The notes under the pieces are model-generated. The model made no database searches and was not told the origin of the DNA. It saw only the letters and a list, made by a program, of their open reading frames with translations. Shown piece after piece: positions 1 to 24,417 of a stretch of 64,000 bases of DNA (positions are counted from its first letter, which is position 1; each line of letters begins with the position of its first letter). A program made the translations under genes and the position numbers. The DNA lies in contig OZ025755.1 of NCBI GenBank assembly GCA_964019335.1, positions 1-64,000 on the forward strand. The letters run 5' to 3'. This stretch comes from Diplonema japonicum. Its lineage: Eukaryota; Protista; Euglenozoa: Diplonemea.

Positions 1-72
1 GGGTTTGCGGGTTTGCGGGTTTGCGGGTTTGCGGGTTTGCGGGTTTGCGGGTTTGCGGGTTTGCGGGTTTGC
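1..72 (+). repeat. (GGGTTTGC)x9 telomere-like octamer array, running off the window start
   Basis: Nine perfect copies; the same repeat recurs at 4266-4289. Confidence 0.95.
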
Positions 73-380
73 GCCCCCCGCCTTCAGCCCCCAGCACGGG
101 AGACTGCGACGGACGAGCGGGCGAAGGCTCTCTGTCCACACCGGAGGGGGCCGAATGTGCCTCCATCCCGTCCGACTCGCACAGGTCCGCGGCCATGGAC
201 ACCACGGGCGCCTCCGGGAACCTCTCGACGCCTTCCGACTGGATGGGGGACTCCTCCTCCCCGTCCGCCTCGAAGAGAACCCGCGCCACGTAAACTTCGT
301 CTGACTCTAGTTGGACTGGGAACCAGGGGCGGACCGCAGGCCCCCTGACGTCCAGCAACTTGGTATTCCCATCCGAAAAA
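73..380 (-). pseudogene. Internal coding fragment (~100 open codons, FSDGNTKLLDVRGPAVRPWFPVQLESDEVYVARVLFEAD...) fused to the octamer array
   Basis: Stop-free minus-strand frame with GC-rich, coding-like composition and no clear start or stop; product unknown. Confidence 0.45.
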
Positions 381-387
381 TTTTTTT

Positions 388-900
388 AAAAAGGGGGACT
401 TGAGAAAATAAATAAAAAGGGGGACTTGAGAAAATAAATAAAAAGGGGGACTTGAGAAAATAAATAAAAAGGGGGACTTGAGAAAATAAATAAAAAGGGG
501 GACTTGAGAAAATAAATAAAAAGGGGGACTTGAGAAAATAAATAAAAAGGGGGACTTGAGAAAATAAATAAAAAGGGGGACTTGAGAAAATAAATAAAAA
601 GGGGGACTTGAGAAAATAAATAAAAAGGGGGACTTGAGAAAATAAATAAAAAGGGGGACTTGAGAAAATAAATAAAAAGGGGGACTTGAGAAAATAAATA
701 AAAAGGGGGACTTGAGAAAATAAATAAAAAGGGGGACTTGAGAAAATAAATAAAAAGGGGGACTTGAGAAAATAAATAAAAAGGGGGACTTGAGAAAATA
801 AATAAAAAGGGGGACTTGAGAAAATAAATAAAAAGGGGGACTTGAGAAAATAAATAAAAAGGGGGACTTGAGAAAATAAATAAAAAGGGGGACTTGAGAA
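388..900. repeat. 26-bp minisatellite (AAGGGGGACTTGAGAAAATAAATAAA), ~19.7 copies
   Basis: Period of 26 read directly (units at 391, 417, ...). Confidence 0.97.
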
Positions 901-1261
901 TGTTTTTTTTTTTTTTTTTTTTTCAAAAGACACACAAGGCACGATAAACCTTAAGAGAAAATAAAAATGTTCCAAAACAGACAATCAAGTTCCAACCTGG
1001 GAGGAAGGCATGGGTTTCTCTTTTTCTTTATGGGAGGGGGAGGGGAAGAAGAAGAAGCAACTCCAAATGATAAAAATTCAAAAATAAAAATCTCAAAAAA
1101 GGCTTAAAAGAAGAAGAGGCAAATTCAAAAACATACTAGGGAGGAATGAGTGGGGCAGGGGGTAAAATTTAGGAGGGGGAAAGAGGGAGAATCAAAAAAG
1201 GGGAAAGGGGCAGAGTGACCAATGTCCATGCGAAAAAGCATAGAGCGGGGGAAGAAGAAAA

Positions 1262-1729
1262 TCAAAAACAGGAAAAACACATCACCACAAAAGAAAAAGA
1301 AGAAAAAAAAAAAATGTGCCTCCTTGTGCCGGTTGCAGCCCCAGGTGCCGGGATTCTGGGTGCCAGGGGTTGGGCTCCAGGCGTTCCCACCTCGGTCCGC
1401 TTCAGCCCCATTGCAGGGTCATCTGGCTTCTGTTCCAGGGCGGCCTCGTGTTCCTCTCTGCGGGCCCTCCTCCTCCCTTCTTTCCTCGCACGACGGTGCC
1501 TTTTCTTCTCCTGTCTGGCAGCCTCCCTCGCCCCCTCCCTCGCCTTGGTCCTCTTCTCCCGACGCCTCTGAAGGGCCGTTTCGCTCCTGTGCCTCCTCCT
1601 GTTCTTCTTCCGCTTGGGCGCTGGCTTAGGTTCCCTGCCACCCATGGCAATCCAGGGGGCTCTTTTCTGTCTTCTCACAAGGGTGTGCAGTGGTGCTCTC
1701 ACGTCGCTCGCAGCCTCCGCCCCAACCAC
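1262..1729 (-). CDS. Arg/Lys-rich basic ORF inside the element (possible downstream exon or second ORF)
   Basis: PKRKKNRRRHRSETALQRRREKR...; preceded by a pyrimidine tract and CAG near 1767; no recognisable domain. Confidence 0.35.
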   Translation of the reverse strand: MVGAEAASDVRAPLHTLVRRQKRAPWIAMGGREPKPAPKRKKNRRRHRSETALQRRREKRTKAREGAREAARQEKKRHRRARKEGRRRARREEHEAALEQKPDDPAMGLKRTEVGTPGAQPLAPRIPAPGAATGTRRHIFFFSSFSFVVMCFSCF

Positions 1730-1866
1730 ACCTTGGCGGGCGGTGGGGGTGGGTGCTGGGTCCCCCTGGTTGTTTGAAAAGAAAAAAGGTTCCTCCTTGT
1801 TTGTTTTTTTTTTTCTTTCCCTTCCACCCTCAAAAAAAGCCCCCGGCCCTTGGGGACCAGGGTGTA

Positions 1867-2330
1867 CACCTCCGTAGAGGGTCCAGAAAAAATGGGGGGC
1901 AGAGAGGGAGGGGCACTACCTTCTCTCGGGCGTGCTGTCTCTCCCTCTGCCTTTTTTTCCTCCGAAGAGGGTCTGTTTTTCACCTCCGTGGAGGGTCCCT
2001 CTGGAGAGGGCTCTATAAAAGAAAAAGGGGGGGACGAATGGGGGGGAGGAACACTACCCTCTCTCGGGAGTGCCACCTCTTCCCCTCTCTCTCTGTTTTC
2101 CTCCGAAGAGGGTCTGTTTTTTACCTCCGTGGAGGGTTCCTCTGGAGAGGGCTCTAAAAATGAAAAAGGGGGGGACAAATGGGGGGGAGGAGCACCACCC
2201 TCTCTCGGGAGTGCCACCTCTTCCCCTTTCTCTCTATTTTCCTCCGAAGAGGGTCTGTTTTCCTCCGAAGAGGGTTCTAAAAAAAAAAGGGGGGCGGGTG
2301 GGGCACTATCCTCTCTTGGGAGTGCCACCC
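1867..2330. repeat. ~141-bp imperfect tandem repeat, ~3 copies
   Basis: TCCGAAGAGGGTCTGTTTT recurs at 1961, 2102 and 2243. Confidence 0.85.
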
Positions 2331-2423
2331 CCCCTTGCCCACAAAAAAGGGGATCTAAAAAAGGGGGTTCGTCTGTTAACCCAGGGGATGGGTCTTCCTG
2401 GGGTGTGCGGGTGAGCTTGGGGC

Positions 2424-3332
2424 CTACCGCACGCAGGGTGATCGACACCCTGACACCAGTGGACATCCCGGACGGGATGTGGTGCGTCCACTGGTGTCTC
2501 GCTTCACCTTCCAACAATCCCATGAGAAGGGGGGCACCAGGTATTTCGCCACCCTGTCCCCCCTCCTCATGACCATTGTGGTCTCGGCTCCGTACGAGAG
2601 GACTAGGACAATCGGTCCCAGCCTCGCGTCGTCCTTGTGGGCGGCAATCCCACAACCAGACTTGTACTTGTTGACAAGTACCTGGTTGGGGACCACCTCG
2701 AGCCCTGCGGCGGCGGCCACCTCCCTCACCCACCCCTCCGCCCCCCCTGGGATCCCCGTGGTGGGGCGCACCTTGGCGTTCGTCCCCTCCCACCGGTACC
2801 CGTATTGGAGGGTCTCCCTCCCTGAGTTCCCAGACAGGGCCTCCCACTTTCCTGAAAGCAGGGCTTTCGGGAAGGCAGGGGCCGGGCCCGTCCTCAACCC
2901 GGGAGGGTGTTCACCATACACCAGTACCCACCCCTTTTTTTCTCCCTCTTTTCTTCCCTCTTCAACAATAGCAGGGTCGGCTGCAGGGGTCGTGGTCGCG
3001 GCGGTCGTGGCTGCGGCAGGGGCGGCTGCGGCGGTCTCAGTTGCGGCGATCAGGGCGGCAGGGTCGGCTGCGGCGTTCAGGGCGGCTGGGGCGGCCGTGG
3101 CTGTAGCAGCGGCGGTCAAAACCGCGGTCTCTGCTAGTGATTTTTTTATTTTATTTTTTTTTTCTAAAGGGGGGTGGGGGGATCTAGGGGGTGGGGGTGG
3201 GGATTCATACTGCCCAACCAGATAGTCTGGTTGGGTCGGCCCTGGCGTCGTGTGCAGCCTGGCGGCCTGTCGGGGTTCCTTCTCCCTGCGGTTTGCGCGG
3301 TCACCTCCTCTTGCGTTCCGTCTTGGATCCAT
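2424..3332 (-). pseudogene. AlkB-family 2OG-Fe(II) dioxygenase, split by a 1-nt frameshift near 2524; the second frame continues to a stop at 1699
   Basis: Frame 1: LQYGYRW...PNQVLVNKYKSGCGIAAHKD...GPIVLVLSYG. Frame 2: MGLLEGEARHQWTHHIP...RVSITLR. Together they give the full HxD...H...RxxxxxR set. Confidence 0.85.
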
Positions 3333-3504
3333 TTTTTATTTTTTTTATTTTTTTTTAAAGTGTGTGTTGGGGGAGGGGATCCTTTCGGTAAGCGGCGGGC
3401 AGGCCGACAGGCAAAACAACCCCCCCGGACGACGGCGACGACGGACGACGGACGCAGCAGCAAACCCAGGCAGAGGCGGCAGGCACCAGCAGAACACGAA
3501 CGAC

Positions 3505-3541
3505 CAATAAAGTACAGAAACTGTAGCTTTAGAATCGTTGG
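3505..3541 (-). other. Spliced-leader exon copy 1 (37 nt)
   Basis: CCAACGATTCTAAAGCTACAGTTTCTGTACTTTATTG; 3' part CAGTTTCTGTACTTTATTG is the conserved kinetoplastid/diplonemid SL core. Confidence 0.9.
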
Positions 3542-3547
3542 AACGAC

Positions 3548-3584
3548 CAATAAAGTACAGAAACTGTAGCTTTAGAATCGTTGG
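3548..3584 (-). other. Spliced-leader exon copy 2, tandem with copy 1 (43-nt unit SL+GTCGTT)
   Basis: Identical 37-mer separated from copy 1 by GTCGTT. Confidence 0.9.
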
Positions 3585-4264
3585 GCTTTCGGGAAGGCAG
3601 GGGCCGGGCCCGTCCTCAACCCGGGAGGGTGTTCACCATACACCAGTACCCACCCCTTTTTTTCTCCCTCTTTTCCTCCCTCTTCAACAATAGCAGGGGT
3701 CGGCTGCAGGGGTCGTGGTCGCGGCGGTCGTGGCTGCGGCAGGGGCGGCTGCGGCGGTCTCAGTTGCGGCGATCAGGGCGGCAGGGTCGGCTGCGGCGTT
3801 CAGGGCGGCTGGGGCGGCCGTGGCTGTAGCAGCGGCGGTCAAAACCGCGGTCTCTGCTAGTGATTTTTTTATTTTATTATTTTTTTTTCTAAAGGGGGGT
3901 GGGGGGATCTAGGGGGTGGGGATTCATACTGCCCAACCAGATTGCCTGGTTGGGTGGGTCTCGGCGCCGTGTGCTGCGGGCTGCGGGCTTGCTCCTGCGG
4001 GCTGCGGCTGCGGCTGCGGTCACCTCCTCCTGCGAGTCGTCTTGGATCCATTTTTTTTTTTTTTTTTTTTTGTTTTATAGTGTGTGTTGGGGGGGAGGGG
4101 ATCCTTTCGTTGAGCGGCGGGCAGGCCGACGGGCAAAACAACCCCCCCGGACGACGGCGACGACGGACGACGGACGCAGCGGCAAACCCAGGCAGAGGCG
4201 GCAGGCACCAGCAGAACACGAACGACCAATAAAGTACAGAAACTGTAGCTTTAGAATCGTTGGT
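3585..4264 (-). mobile_element. Second, 3'-truncated copy of the element (SL, 5' UTR, ORF start), breaking off near the start of the AlkB domain
   Basis: Near-identical to 2862-3541 except for a diverged first coding segment (MDPRRLAGGGDRSRSRS vs MDPRRNARGGDRANRR). Confidence 0.8.
4227..4264 (-). other. Spliced-leader exon copy 3 (38 nt, ACCAACG...TTATTG)
   Basis: Separated from the (GCAAACCC)n repeats by a single extra G. Confidence 0.9.
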
Positions 4265-4265
4265 C

Positions 4266-4289
4266 GCGGGTTTGCGGGTTTGCGGGTTT
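4266..4289 (+). repeat. (GCGGGTTT)x3 junction repeat
   Basis: Same octamer as 1-72; the last TTT merges into a T14 run (4287-4300). Confidence 0.9.
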
Positions 4290-4524
4290 TTTTTTTTTTT
4301 AAAAAGGGGGACTTGAGAAAATAAATAAAAAGGGGGACTTTAGAAAATAAATAAAAAGGGGGACTTGAGAAAATAAATAAAAAGGGGGACTTGAGAAAAT
4401 AAATAAAAAGGGGGACTTGAGAATGTTTTTTTTTTTTTTTTTTCCCCTTCAAAAGACACACAAGGCGCGATAAACCTTAAGAGAAAATAAAAATATTCCA
4501 AAACAGACAATCAAGTTCCAACCT
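4287..4524 (-). mobile_element. 5'-truncated 3' end of the element (A14 tail, ~4.7 copies of the 26-mer, ~100-bp shared segment)
   Basis: 4424-4524 matches 901-998, then diverges abruptly. Confidence 0.8.
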
Positions 4525-4886
4525 CTCTGTAGGGGTCGTGCTGCCCCCGTTGAAGTCGAGGCAGATGGCGTTGTGGAAGCTGGTTGCCGTGTCGCCGACT
4601 TCCCAGTTTCGTCACCACCACCATCATCCCGTCCCTCCCCAGAGGGGCCACCCCGTTCCGCCCCTCCTTCGTGATGTAGTACCACCTCCAGTCCTGCGTG
4701 AGTGATGTGGTTCGCCGTGAACTTCAGGGCCCCCTGCCCCGCCGCCGCGAGCATCCCGTCAGCACGTTCTGGTCCCCCTTCCTTGCAAGCGTAGTTCCTC
4801 GACGCTGGCGGACGCCTTCACGTAGCCGCACCCGTGAGCCATCCGGACAGCGTTGTCACGCGCACACAAGGGGCCAGCAGCATCAT
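4525..4886 (-). pseudogene. Degenerate gene relic truncated by the element
   Basis: ATG at 4886 behind an acceptor-like region; broken frames; GC-rich. Confidence 0.3.
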
Positions 4887-6487
4887 TGTGTGTGAGTGTG
4901 TGTTGGTGATCCTGTTTGCTTGTTTGTAGAAATAGAATAATACGACATTGAAGAAGAAGAAGAAAATAAATAGAAAAAGAGAGGTGGAGGAAGAGAAGAA
5001 GATGGGTGTGGAAGCGAGTGTAAAAAACTGTATTCCCCTTTTTCAACACACAAAGGGCAAAAAACACAGTTCAACACAGGAAACAAAAATACCTTTCATC
5101 GTTCATAAAAGAGGGGTGGGGAATAGAAAAAAAGAAAAGAGAAACAAAACAGGAGGGGGGGGAGGAGGAGGAGGAGGACAGGACAGTTAGATTAGAGTGC
5201 AGGTTGTATAGAGGCAAAAAAAAAGGGGGAGAAAGCGAGAAAACAATTTCTTTCAGTTACTGCGTATTGTTACTTTTCTATGTTAGAGACTACCTCGTAA
5301 CAAGAAGAAAGTACGAAAAATCTCAAGTTCAAAAAAAAAAAAGAGAGACATTTAAGGGTACCTGCGGTATGTGGCAGGACGCCTAAAAAAAGGGGGGGGG
5401 GGCTGGAGGATAAGAAAGGAGGGGATTAAAGAATCGGTTGTGGAATATTGCGAATATGAATGGACGGATCTGCACTCTGTCTTGTCTTTAAAAAAAATGA
5501 AAAATATATATTATATATGTTTCAAAAAAAAAAATAAATAAATAAAAGAGAGGGAAAGGGACAAGTTGTTAAGAAAGAAAATCCTTTATGATGAGAGAGG
5601 AGTCAAAAAGTGAGGAAGCCCCAGGACTAATAGAATCTACCGAGGTTTTCCTTATTTTTTTTTTCTTCTTCTTTTTTTCTTATTTAGCAGTGATAAATGA
5701 GGGAGGAGAGGGAAGAGAACATAAGGCATTCCAAGTCTATAAGGGAAATAAAAGAGGGGAAGCAAGCTTTACGCGCTCTGTATTCTTTTTATTTTCCTTA
5801 TGAGGAGAAAATTTTTTAAGGGCAACGGGAGGGGGAAGGGAACCAAATATTTCTTTTTTTTAAAAAAAAGGGGGTGGGTGGATTAAATCAAACGTGTTTT
5901 CCTCCGGTGATAGCGCAGACTTCTCAAGCATTTCCCTTTTTCATTTCTTTTTTCTCCCCACCACCCCTTCTTTGTTTCCCCTTAAGCCAAGCTTCTTCTT
6001 TTCTTTTCTTCTTCATGAACCCCTCAGCTCAGGGGGAGGAAGGGGTGGTGGAGGAAAAAGGAAAAAAAAAAAAGGAGGAGCAAGAAGAAGTAAACTAATT
6101 GCTAATATGTAGTCTCCCCCCCCCCTCTTCTCTTTCAAGTAAGATAGATAAGAAAGAAGGAGGGGGGGGGGGGGGGAAAGAAACCGGTTCAGCTCGTATT
6201 TATATCACCGAGTGGAGAATTATTGAGGAGAGGGCTCAAAGATAACTTTAAATACCCCTGGTTTTGGTTTTAAGAAGAAAAAAAGGGGGAAACGAAGATG
6301 TTGGGAAGGAACGGTCAAAAACAAGGAAAAGAATGAAACGACGAAGAACACAAAAAAGCTTTCTTCATCTTTCTTTTTTTTCACTCTTGCTGTTTTATTT
6401 CCGTTGTTGTTTTTCTCCTTTCCGTCCTCTTTCCTTTTCTCTCGTTTCAAAATTGGTCTTTTTTTTTCTTTTTTTTCCCCCCCTCCT

Positions 6488-9400
6488 CTAATTCCCTTGC
6501 GCGGACGCCTTGCACCCCCTCGAGGGGCTGATGGCCGCCGCCACAGGACGAGACCAGGCTCCCACCATGTCGTGGGCGGTGTTCCAGAAGAAGGCCCCAC
6601 CGTTGCAGGGGTACGCCTCCTTCAGCTCATTCATCACTCTGACAGCCTGCTGCGGGTTGCTGTTGAACTCTCCGCACCCGCTGATGCAGAAGCCGAACAC
6701 CACCTTTGTCGGGTCGTTCTCGAAGACCTCCACCACGAGGGTCGTGAGGTGCGCCAGGGCGGAGTCGAAGACGCCACCGTTGATCCCGTCCGTGTTGGGG
6801 TGCGTCACCCCGTTGTAGTACTGCGGCATGATGAAGTTCACAGTTGCGGCCACCTCCCGCATCACCTCGAAGTAGCCTGTCCCGGGCAGAAGGTCGCTGT
6901 CCAGTGGGGAGTGGGTCACGAGGCTTCCGACGGGGAGCCTCTCCCTCAGTTCCAGGGTCGTCACCCTCAGGAAGTTCCGCGCCTCCGCTCCCTTCGAGAA
7001 CGACGAGCCGCGCTGCCCGTCCTGGTAGTAGTACAGGTAGTCGATGTTGATCCCGTCGAAGCCCTGCCTGTCCGCAATGGCGGCCAGCTGCTGCGCCAGG
7101 TGCACCTCCTTCCCGAAGCAGTGCTCCCAGCAGTCGTTCAGCCCGTCCCAAGAGCCCCCCATCTCCCCCCCGCCGAAGGAGAGTATCACCTTCTTCCCGG
7201 CGGCCCTCCACCTCGCCACGAGCCCCGGCTGCGGGGAGTTGTCGCACACCGCAACAACGGGTATCAGGTCGCACTGCTCGTTGCACTGGTTCATCCCTGG
7301 AGCCCAGGTGTAGGTCACCGCAAAGGAAACCAAGACGTGTGTGTAGGCCTCCATCTGCGCGTCTGTCGGGCACGCCAGCCAGTTCCCGACGGAGGCGATG
7401 AGCCTGCTGTCCACGGCTGGAGGGGTGTGGGGGATCCCCTCTACGCCACTGCTGCACCCCTTCGAGGGGCTGATGACCTGCTCAGAGAGAGGACGAGACC
7501 AGGCGCCGTTCGCGTCGTTCTCAACGTTCCAGAAGAAGGCCCCACCGTTGCAGGGGTACGCCTCCTTCAGCTCATTCATCACTCTGACAGCCTGCTGCGG
7601 GTTGCTGTTGAACTCTCCGCACCCGCTGATGCAGAAGCCGAACACCACCTTTGTCGGGTCGTTCTCGAAGACCTCCACCACGAGGGTCGTGAGGTGCGCC
7701 AGGGCGGAGTCGAAGACGCCACCGTTGATCCCGTCCGTGTTGGGGTGCGTCACCCCGTTGTAGTACTGCGGCATGATGAAGTTCACAGTTGCGGCCACCT
7801 CCCGCATCACCTCGAAGTAGCCTGTTCCGTGCACGAGGTCGCTGTCCAGTGGGGAGTGGGTCACGAGGCTTCCGACGGGGAGCCTCTCCCTCAGTTCCAG
7901 GGTCGTCACCCTCAAGAAGGTCTGCGCCTCCGCTCCCTTCGAGAACGACGAGCCGCGCTGCCCGTCCTGGTAGTAGTACGGGTAGTCGATGTTGATCCCG
8001 TCGAAGCCCTGCCTGACCGCAATGGCGGCCAGCTGCTGCGCCAGGTGCACCCCCTTCCCGAAGCAGTGCTCCCAGCAGTCGTTCAGCCCGTCCCGAGAGC
8101 TCCCCATCCCCGCCCCGCCGAAGGAGAGTATCACCTTCTTTCCGGCGGCCCTCCACCTCGCCACGAGCTCCGGCTGCGGGGAGTTGTCGCACACCGCAAC
8201 AACGGGTATCAGGTCGCACTGCTCGTTGCACTGGTTCATCCCTGGAGCAGTCACCGCAAAGGAAACCAAGACGTGTGTGTAGGCCTCCATCTGCGCGTCT
8301 GTCGGACACGCCTGCCAGTTCCCGATGGAGGCGATGAGCCTGTTGTCGTCTTTGTGGATGGTGTTCGCACCACCACCACCACCAGTCTCGTCCCTGATAG
8401 TGATGGTCTGCGTTCTGTTGCTGCCCGAGGCGGTGGCCCCGCTGCACACCGATGTATTGAAGAAAGGGACGATGGACCACACACGGCTGACAATCCACGT
8501 GCTCGCATCACGAACCGGGTCGCTGTCCACGTAGAAGATGTCGAACTCCTGCCTGCAAGGGGAGACCCCCTCCGCTACCCCGAGCTCCATCGGGTCCGTC
8601 GACTGCTCCGTGTTCACGCGGACGTCGGCGGGGAAGGAGGAGGATACGAAAGCAGGCGGGGCCGGTTCCAAAGTTATAATCTGCGCCACCGTCTCCGAGA
8701 TCCCTCCGCACACTGGGTTGTCATGGAGCTGCCACGTCACCTCCATGAAGGTGGACCCGCATATCCTGTTCGGGAAGTCTGTCGCGGGGAGGATGCTCTG
8801 ATTCAAAAGCTTCACCTGCGCCCCTTCCGTGCACTCGGGGTCGATGAACCGAGAGAGCGGCTTCAGGCTCTCCAGGTTGATTTCCTGGTCGCAACGGAAG
8901 GTGTAGGAGGTGGCCCCTCCGAGGACTGGGGGCCTTCGCACCACCATCCCCGCCTCCGTGCTGATGTCGTTCGTGAGGCGATCCTGGTTCTCCAGCGCCT
9001 TGTCCGCCATCTTCGACACCATCCTGTTCTGCGTGTTCTCCACGCTCGCCTCGTAGCTCGCCTGGCTGCTGAAGTCGTACGGCATGTCTTCCAGCGTCAC
9101 CATCTCCTCCGAGCTGGACAGCCCGCCCCCGGTTCCCTTCCCCCCGTAGGTGCGCACCCCGCCCCTGAAGCCCGACCCCATGGCCGCCGATGCGTCCGTC
9201 CCGAACGGCACCATCACCGTCGTCGTCTCCAGAGAGGGCATCGGGACCTCCATCCCCGAGTGGACGTTCTGCAGCCCCGGGTTCTCATCCTTTGACTCGT
9301 CTACAACCCTCGTCTTCCGCGACATCTCATCCGACTTCGTCTTCACCTCCCCCGCAGCGAGGGCCACCTCCTCCATGCACTGCGGGTCCGCGTAGCTCGG

Positions 9401-19739: not shown

Positions 19740-19742
<3 letters not shown>
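18612..19742 (-). CDS. Ankyrin-repeat protein
   Basis: Multiple ankyrin motifs (GSPPLYNAA, NETPFFIAV, GDYPMHVAC, GETPLFIAC); start MSLCAPT. Confidence 0.9.

Positions 19743-19778
<36 letters not shown>

Positions 19779-21395: not shown

Positions 21396-21438
<43 letters not shown>

Positions 21439-24328: not shown

Positions 24329-24417
<89 letters not shown>

Follow-up and report, generated by a model that had tools for sequence, protein, structure and literature searches.

Dead Copies of a Probable Telomere-Repeat-Specific LINE-Type Family, Headed by a Spliced Leader, at a Chromosome End

What kind of element leaves DNA copies headed by a spliced leader (SL) lined up at the tip of a chromosome? 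The question is raised by the first 4,524 nt of the window, a stretch of 64,000 nt (C108:1-64000) whose position 1 is the end of a contig in an assembly of 62.5 Mb and 132 contigs. Given the features of this region and of its relatives across the assembly, we think it very probable that 1-4524 is a chromosome end with three or four dead copies of an autonomous, telomere-repeat-specific family of the long interspersed nuclear element (LINE) type in a diplonemid-type euglenozoan. The window holds dead copies alone, and the biological interest of the locus resides in the family to which they belong.

Results

Intact members of the family, about 9.4-10.7 kb in length, lie at other contig ends. Their single polyprotein is predicted to combine an AlkB-like dioxygenase, an OTU cysteine protease, a LINE reverse transcriptase (RT) and a C-terminal CCHC motif with a restriction-like endonuclease. 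Three full-length open reading frames (ORFs; 2,990, 2,819 and 2,742 aa) each contain 2OG-FeII_Oxy_2, OTU and RVT_1 domains, with E values of 1e-16 to 1e-18 for RVT_1 across the three and of 3.5e-13 for PF13532 in full-length copies. Many AlkB-domain matches sit in open frames of 2,300-3,005 aa, many of the strong ones are in frame with OTU-RT, and several ORFs of at least 2,800 aa are intact. Two subfamilies can be distinguished, which are 40% identical overall. The first-pass annotation of the locus had noted no RT or endonuclease and had supposed that the copies were moved in trans; the window copies do lack both, whereas full-length relatives encode RT and endonuclease in the same ORF as AlkB. 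The longer copies with an RT ORF that it proposed to look for in the assembly are thus at hand, three of their ORFs having been checked by domain.

To which class of retroelements does this family belong? In a sequence search of the PDB, the RT region matched R2 retrotransposon proteins best (E 1.5e-8) and LINE-1 ORF2p more weakly. An AlphaFold model of the 915-aa RT-endonuclease part (pLDDT 92.6) gave the same order in Foldseek, the top 7 matches being R2 structures (E 2.7e-23 to 1e-17), followed by LINE-1 ORF2p, with telomerase chains appearing from rank 34 down at a TM of ~0.23; by VIA-align, model residues 41-908 match R2 chains up to the C-terminal endonuclease domain (chain to 1104-1161) with Z of 20-23. 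Downstream of the RT, both subfamilies keep C-x2-C...H-x3-C, RHDRV, PADV, DV.VVHP, K..KY and ETFGGFG. In an alignment of 41 homologues, 39 of them from the database, C722, C727, C742, H750, E771 and D801 are invariant, P783 and D785 are nearly so, and the RH(D/N) column is kept, invariant or nearly, throughout. The C-terminal domain is accordingly described here as a predicted R2-type CCHC/restriction-like endonuclease, judging by these residues and by the modelled fold. Because the RT matches R2 in both sequence and fold, the element is an R2/CRE/NeSL-type LINE and not a Penelope-like element. The first-pass annotation had brought up the latter class, specifically the Athena/Terminon system, and a telomeric site, chains punctuated by repeats, giant size and an OTU domain do recall what the literature reports of Terminons. 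Such an assignment is nevertheless extremely improbable: the RT resembles R2 and LINE-1 in sequence and over its full-length fold, with TERT chains far lower; the endonuclease is of the CCHC/restriction-like kind rather than GIY-YIG, for which Pfam domain scans of the full-length ORFs gave no match; and the 3' end is a poly(A) tail, as in the A14 at window 4287-4300 and the A61 on contig C31, with 5'-truncated copies at window 4300-4524, C100 and C10. Membership of the R1 clade (TRAS/SART) fails as well, since Pfam scans of all five 600-aa ORF slices found no AP/EEP endonuclease domain.

The accessory domains appear well preserved in intact copies. The AlkB domain shows H-K/T-D, WTHH and RVSITLR, that is, the HxD...H triad and the RxSxTxR motif for binding of 2-oxoglutarate (2OG), and its best PDB match is ALKBH8 (E 2e-9); the OTU domain retains GNC...H, and its nearest PDB matches are OTUD5 and OTUD3. 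The stretch from AlkB to OTU (residues 140-1220) has no match among the 1,550-4,900-aa proteins of the searched database. The RT-endonuclease module belongs to a very large family (18,653 representatives at E<=0.001), in one relative of which the RT is preceded by an Ulp1 protease. Among named database proteins, the closest (44-46% identity) is a Diplonema papillatum entry annotated as 'SLACS 132 kDa protein'.

Where do the copies lie? The AlkB-like domain of the window has about 144 matches in the genome, hardly any of which is more than ~10 kb from a contig end. Up to 20 kb from a left end, 62/63 matches are on the minus strand; near right ends they are on plus, so that the sense strand is always directed to the terminus. 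The 214 SL 23-mers cluster near contig ends in the same manner, on the minus strand at left and on the plus strand at right, and roughly 80 contig ends share this architecture and its strict rule of orientation. The feature map of the window and this genome-wide SL orientation bear out the first-pass description of co-oriented, head-to-tail retro-copies with a DNA-encoded SL, punctuated by an octamer repeat. No parent AlkB gene was found outside the element, all strong genomic matches being element copies near contig ends, and for this reason a processed retrocopy of a cellular AlkB mRNA was rejected. Contig C24 (1-18200 and further on) carries a head-to-tail tandem series whose units each measure exactly 10,659 bp and meet at the same poly(A)/SL joint (tandem positions 7178, 17837, 28496 and 39079); two of the units have open frames of 3,005 aa. 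Convergent SL/element copies were also seen, chromosome-internal or near an end, at C30:333173(+) and 335340(-) and at C15:777133(+) and 779080(-); these could be ancient end-to-end fusions or assembly joins.

The octamer that accompanies the copies, GGGTTTGC, is the terminal repeat of most contigs. The genome contains 3,580 forward and 2,322 reverse occurrences of its 24-mer, on the plus strand at contig starts and on the minus strand at contig ends; octamer arrays start C1 and C4 and close C3, and 16 of 20 sampled left contig ends open with arrays of 50-1,400 bp. The genome has no TTAGGG arrays, and TTAGGG was rejected as the real telomere. A TERT-like gene, with a Telomerase_RBD match within a 1,086-aa open frame, is located on C41. 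Left ends start 5'-(GGGTTTGC)n and right ends close (GCAAACCC)n-3', which makes the 3'-terminal strand C/A-rich. This polarity is unaffected by reverse-complementing contigs, and the healing-like junctions lie on the C/A-rich strand. The outermost copy has lost its 3' part and carries the array as a direct cap at six contig ends (C1, C10, C16, C21, C36 and C97) and also in the window; arrays begin in all eight registers, and they also begin on unique DNA at C4, C7 and C8. We infer that such capped, truncated copies reflect erosion or breakage of an end followed by de novo repeat addition. Variant telomere repeats also form long runs, either proximal to the canonical 8-mer or replacing it: the 9-mers GGGGTTTGC and GGGTTTTGC (C2:1-2900 and other contig ends) and a 10-mer on C36. 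A short module containing ...GAGAAATAAAGCAATCACTT... recurs between octamer stretches (C21:1450-1530, C6:1780-1825) and may be another small retro-unit. A literature search for the octamer in any rotation returned primer noise alone.

How are these components arranged in the window? From the contig end inwards, 1-4524 contains the following features, for which full-length positions refer to the intact element.

1-73, plus strand: octamer array (GGGTTTGC)9.1, the end repeat of the contig and probably of the chromosome; the strand running 5' to 3' to the terminus reads GCAAACCC
71-359, minus strand: two joined ORF pieces (359-225 and 224-71) from the 3' part of the giant ORF, B (C24-type) subfamily
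387-900, minus strand: 26-mer array of 19.8 repeats, sense TTTATTTTCTCAAGTCCCCCTTTTTA, the variable 3'-terminal tail repeat of the main copy
855-1316, minus strand: 3' untranslated region (3'UTR) of the main copy, full-length positions 8768-9231, 98.3% identical to the C31 full-length copy
1303-1317, minus strand: internal deletion junction, a T12 run in the sense strand, with full-length position 1953 joined to 8768
1316-3381, minus strand: 5' coding part of the main copy, 99.7% identical to the C62 copy
3382-3504, minus strand: 123-nt leader that separates the SL of the main copy from its ORF region
3505-3540, minus strand: SL that heads the main copy (SL nt 4-39); the duplication overlaps its first bases
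3541-3584, minus strand: extra unit of SL plus 7 nt of leader, a tandem duplicate (period 43, 2.0 copies, 100%)
3585-4264, minus strand: second copy, 5' part only, with SL, leader and N-terminal coding region, 96.4% identical to C31 element positions 39-547
4266-4289, plus strand: interstitial octamers (GCGGGTTT)3, with the SL end of the second copy on one side and the poly(A) of the most proximal copy on the other
4287-4524, minus strand: third, most proximal copy, with the last ~150 nt of the 3'UTR, A18, 26-mer x4.8 and an A14 tail

In sense orientation, from 4524 to 1, the order is E1 (4524-4287), (AAACCCGC)3, E2 (4264-3585), SL plus 7 nt, E3 (3540-375), the B-subfamily pieces and the terminal array; E3, the main copy, comprises element positions 39-1953 joined to 8768-9231. 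On the plus strand, the same series begins with (GGGTTTGC)9.1, a coding-like fragment of ~290 bp, the 19.8 26-mers and T21 at 903-923, continues over ~2.6 kb up to the antisense SL at 3505-3540, the 43-nt duplicate and the 680-bp second 5' copy, and ends with (GCGGGTTT)3 at 4266-4289, T14 at 4287-4300, the 4.8 26-mers at 4300-4423, T18 and, beyond it, ~80 nt of 3'UTR reaching 4524. The repeats are far from chance expectation: a 16-mer of the octamer occurs 9 times in the window (0.01 expected), and the SL core ACAGTTTCTGTACTTTATTG has 3 minus-strand matches (3505-3524, 3548-3567 and 4227-4246) compared with 0 in 100 shuffles. Octamers, SL copies, T14 and 26-mers were all recovered at the positions within 1-4524 that the earlier reading had assigned to them.

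None of the copies could act as a functional unit of the AlkB-encoding kind that had been envisaged for the locus; they are derivatives by deletion and frameshift. In E3 the deletion removes ~6.8 kb, and with it the OTU, RT, endonuclease and C-terminal region. The ORF at 2424-3332(-) still matches PF13532 (2OG-Fe(II) oxygenase, AlkB-like; E 8e-10), and a 1-nt deletion after 2518 shifts the frame ahead of the second His and the RxSxTxR motif, the extra G at this point being present in all contigs of 3 runs and in 3 aligned other copies. Downstream of this ORF lie 141-bp repeats (1906-2261), of which the main copy has one extra. Its 3'UTR includes an internal A21 run, and the T21 at 903-923, previously taken for an oligo(T) joint, is therefore an A-run inside the 3'UTR rather than a poly(A) tail, as comparison with the full-length reference tail makes clear. 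After the 26-mer array, the sense strand of the main copy reads T5-A7 at 386-375; the same 26-mer module closes other copies with 2-8 repeats each. The coding fragment at 71-359, which the first pass had also recognized, turns out to belong to the second subfamily of the same element: pieces 359-225 and 224-71 are 100% and 99.4% identical to the C24 copy (reverse complement 8401-8535 and 9115-9268) and map to B-subfamily positions 8076-8210 and 8790-8943. It is truncated at both its 5' and its 3' side, with the octamer array directly capping the 3' end. E2 has its SL at 4226-4264, with G as the variable first base, reaches full-length position ~547 and is 3'-truncated, with CC microhomology at the joint with the next SL. 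The exact duplication of the 43-nt unit (SL plus 7 nt) spans 3498-3584 and is a product of template jump or slippage. E1, 96.6% identical to full-length positions 9088-9231, is strongly 5'-truncated and meets unique DNA at 4524-4531.

What heads the copies? From 20 of them, the SL was derived as 39 nt, xACCAACGATTCTAAAGCTACAGTTTCTGTACTTTATTG. Its head, AACCAACGATT, is unlike the kinetoplastid AACTAACGCTA. The entry 'Euglenozoa 14' is, we presume, the Diplonema SL. The sequence found here differs from that entry (AACCAACGATTTAAAAGC...) at two positions (PMC3795323). Given this resemblance and the Diplonema papillatum match, distant as the latter is, we take the host to be probably a diplonemid-type euglenozoan. 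The first base varies (G, C, A, T) before a constant ACCAACG, and what lies upstream depends on the copy: the poly(A) of the preceding copy, octamers in varied registers or unrelated unique DNA. This variation fits independent cDNAs that ended at the cap, and end-to-end template jumps as well. The RT also copied an ordinary trans-spliced RNA, as seen in the joint SL/GACACTATGC on C32. The SL is followed by the 123-nt leader (window 3382-3504 and 4104-4226), which starts with GT, ends with AG, has no internal AG and is pyrimidine-rich; in the C31 copy, with its intact ORF of 2,819 aa, and in the C49 copy, the sequence reads SL/GATCCCC, exactly without the leader. All 65 exact leader starts (65/65) follow the TG that ends the SL, and no leader in any subfamily across the assembly is preceded by an AG acceptor. 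Hence, no locus of the assembly could yield SL/GTCGT by canonical trans-splicing, and an acceptor-bearing master copy of the leader was rejected. A single GGGTTTGC within the 5' leader was considered as a telomerase-like template and dropped, because neither the B subfamily nor the C31 copy has it. A Rfam scan gave no window match at the gathering score and noise alone around SL and leader.

Another origin for the head of the element is conceivable. SL and leader might be an inherited 5' module, derived from or mimicking an SL RNA gene, that serves as internal promoter and cap signal and is not renewed by trans-splicing; the copies would then not derive from trans-spliced mRNA as the first pass understood it. 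The 65 leader starts after the TG of the SL, the lack of any such start after AG in any subfamily, the GT...AG bounds of the leader and its exact absence from SL/GATCCCC copies, including an intact full-length one, would all agree with this idea, and LINEs commonly use internal promoters in the 5'UTR. We regard it as possible but rather doubtful, because the RT demonstrably copies other SL-joined RNAs, as at SL/GACACTATGC, and because coordinates on C20 hint at a copy in which the SL was spliced on anew.

Two side observations concern the SL itself. At C20:399031-399088, the coordinates (by arithmetic only) imply a second ...TTATTG 16 nt after a full SL and then the leader; taken at face value, this suggests the relict SL that repeated trans-splicing at the SL-internal CTACAG/ site would leave. 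SL followed by GTA/GTG occurs at 57 dispersed, mostly chromosome-internal sites (e.g., C2:150572 and C1:890271). These are probably the genuine SL RNA genes, which would then be scattered instead of gathered in a single tandem array.

Might the chain be a product of the assembly? If cDNA or chimeric reads had been assembled onto the contig end, it would be absent from the chromosome, and SL-to-poly(A) concatenates do look like cDNA concatemers, seen here via short contigs rather than spanning reads. Still, this is very improbable: the same architecture and orientation rule hold at roughly 80 contig ends and include intact elements of 9-11 kb and tandem arrays, the patterns of truncation plus capping are biological and not library-like, and runs of three studies contain most words of window 1-6000. 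Specifically, three independent studies of the same organism contain 63-88% of the sampled words, and two other organisms 40-45%; joints in the Logan-contig mapping of the window are mostly paralogue mappings. In contigs of two studies (X1 and X3), the unique sequence from 4532 is preceded by a different ...GGGGTGGGGAGGG(T/G)TGTCGGGAC. Such loose ends at 4531 indicate that the end structure may be polymorphic between strains or alleles, or may have a paralogue. In run X7, SL-containing bins are 100-1000x deeper than their flanks and the element body stays at flank level; this run may be RNA, in which case the element 3'UTR would be moderately represented.

Proximal to the chain, all long ORFs within 6404-54184 are on the minus strand (14/16 of at least 350 aa; the two plus-strand ORFs overlap minus ones). 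This arrangement implies a terminal gene array that is transcribed toward the chromosome end, co-directional with the retroelement copies, and read-through from it could transcribe the latter. Very long homopolymers lie between the genes (T83 at 24334-24416, T37 at 19742-19778 and T39 at 21400-21438).

Discussion

How might the family insert into telomeric repeats? The copies are all oriented alike: their sense strand runs on into (AAACCCGC)n and is directed to the chromosome end. Intact 3' ends run poly(A)-AAACCCGC (window, C9), and the 5'-truncated C100 copy has octamers on both sides. We envision that the endonuclease would nick the G-rich strand of a GGGTTTGC array and that the resulting GGGTTT-3'OH would pair with the poly(A) tail of element RNA and prime cDNA synthesis; the poly(A)-octamer junctions, as far as they can be read, fit a nick after GGGTTT in this strand and priming on the tail. 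Insertion on the G-rich octamer strand would account for the single shared orientation. The RT would then copy to the capped 5' end of the SL, often adding or misreading one base, and could jump to another RNA, giving poly(A)/SL and SL/SL junctions, before the cDNA end is joined to proximal repeats or unique DNA. End-to-end template jumping is known for R2-type RTs. In both respects the mechanism proposed by the first pass finds support: the (GCGGGTTT)3-T14 junction fits priming of poly(A) RNA on the TTT of the repeat by GGGTTT-3', and the variable first SL base together with the poly(A)/SL junctions fits copying to the cap with template jumps. Later, ends would erode into the distal copy and be re-capped by octamers, which would explain the 3'-truncated fragment at 71-359. 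Deletion derivatives such as the 3.2-kb copy may arise by template switching or recombination, and would spread, if at all, via the proteins of intact copies or via subtelomere exchange. As for the AlkB domain, it might plausibly strip RT-blocking base methylations from element RNA.

How much of the present arrangement was made by retrotransposition itself? A chain born in this way may have acquired its present form and spread mainly by subtelomeric recombination (unequal exchange, break-induced replication or gene conversion), the window junctions then being repair joints. One poly(A)/SL junction is shared by the tandem units of C24, fragments from separate contig ends match each other at 99-100% identity, the 5' parts of the C9 and C16 copies are chimeras of the two subfamilies, and at the loose ends at 4531, contigs of two studies have other sequence to the left of the breakpoint. 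Conversely, 5' ends stop exactly at SL nt 1-2 with differing first bases and upstream flanks, 5'-truncated copies are flanked by octamers, and several ORFs of at least 2,800 aa remain intact; these three points show independent retrotransposition events. We thus treat a predominant role of recombination as a serious possibility, if not the one we would choose; the two processes are not mutually exclusive.

Several observations weigh against a telomere-repeat-specific LINE family as outlined here. Every copy is headed by the SL and yet the assembly has no master copy with an AG acceptor from which an SL-headed RNA could be regenerated. The contiguity of the 1-4524 chain rests on short Logan contigs of multicopy DNA, not on spanning reads. 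Cleavage of the octamer and the nick site are deduced from about five junctions: target specificity is seen in a handful of clean junctions, many copies adjoining other copies or unique DNA. The identical junction of the C24 tandem units means that at least part of the spread is due to recombination, not retrotransposition. Expression of the element stays predicted. Finally, the G-rich strand is at the 5' end of terminal arrays, opposite to the canonical rule, and this unorthodox polarity leaves the relation to telomerase uncertain.

From the same facts, a more radical organization of the ends could be drawn. The C/A-rich 3'-terminal strand is continuous with the LINE sense strand, and the SL-headed copies have no acceptor-bearing master; conceivably, the element mimics SL RNA to obtain its cap, its AlkB domain strips cap-adjacent methylations, and it builds or heals chromosome ends together with telomerase or instead of it. 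We consider this improbable, and we retain as our preferred reading a telomere-repeat-specific LINE family whose dead copies make up the end of the window.

Insects, Giardia, rotifers and green algae all provide examples of retrotransposons specific to telomeres, and each of these has informed ideas on the relation of retroelements to telomerase. The present family would add a euglenozoan telomere-specific element with an R2/CRE-type core, the RNA of which begins with the host SL. It marks more than 100 chromosome ends of a near-complete assembly and exposes an octamer telomere that contradicts the usual strand polarity. It also brings together AlkB and OTU, otherwise found together in the replicases of plant RNA viruses, and thereby offers a natural system in which to ask if an RNA demethylase helps an RT through modified RNA. 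A literature search returned no description of an AlkB-OTU LINE, a diplonemid telomere or a diplonemid telomeric element.

How does the family compare with known systems? Flexivirus replicases carry AlkB next to an OTU protease. In retroelements, an AlkB domain has a precedent in orchid Ty3/Gypsy elements (PMC9289625). Common to these and to the family described here is an AlkB-type dioxygenase inside the replicase or polyprotein of an RNA-templated replicon; flexiviruses, however, are RNA viruses and the orchid elements have long terminal repeats, whereas here the AlkB-OTU pair resides in a LINE. Retroposed SL-bearing genes of dinoflagellates, known for the recycling of 'relict SL' sequences, likewise contain a DNA-encoded SL as proof of reverse transcription, and the possible C20 copy with its partial second SL recalls them further, but those are cellular mRNAs copied in trans, and in the present case the SL heads the retrotransposon itself, in all copies.

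Among telomeric elements, Athena/Terminon of bdelloid rotifers resembles the family in its telomeric location, in chains split by short stretches of telomere repeat, and in large size with accessory domains; it differs from the LINE/R2-like RT, restriction-like endonuclease and poly(A) tail found here. GilM/GilT (Genie) of Giardia and HeT-A/TART of Drosophila also form head-to-tail non-LTR arrays at chromosome ends, with truncated terminal copies that are capped or extended. In those systems, 5' ends point outward and copies at the terminus are 5'-truncated, whereas in the present family 3' ends point outward and terminal copies are 3'-truncated.

The closest parallels come from two groups of LINEs. 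TRAS1 and SART1 of Bombyx mori, members of the R1 clade, are telomere-repeat-specific LINEs with two ORFs and an N-terminal AP-type endonuclease. The diplonemid-type family shares with them insertion into telomeric repeats, a fixed orientation, poly(A) set against the repeat and co-oriented arrays near ends, and departs from them in its one giant ORF, its C-terminal R2-type endonuclease, its AlkB and OTU domains, the SL on every copy and its euglenozoan host. With SLACS, CZAR and CRE1-2 of the CRE clade, NeSL and R2, it has in common the enzymatic core, in which CCHC and a restriction-like endonuclease come after a LINE RT, and probably also site-specific insertion, and the resemblance to NeSL extends to the Ulp1 protease ahead of the RT in a related database protein. 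CRE elements, in contrast, lie inside SL RNA genes and bear the first SL bases only; the probable target here is the octamer, the head is a complete 39-nt SL, and AlkB and OTU are added. Placement in the CRE clade proper therefore fails: the complete SL is at the 5' side only, poly(A) and octamers lie downstream, and there is no split SL. By its mode of action the family is closest to TRAS/SART, and by its enzymes to CRE/NeSL/R2.

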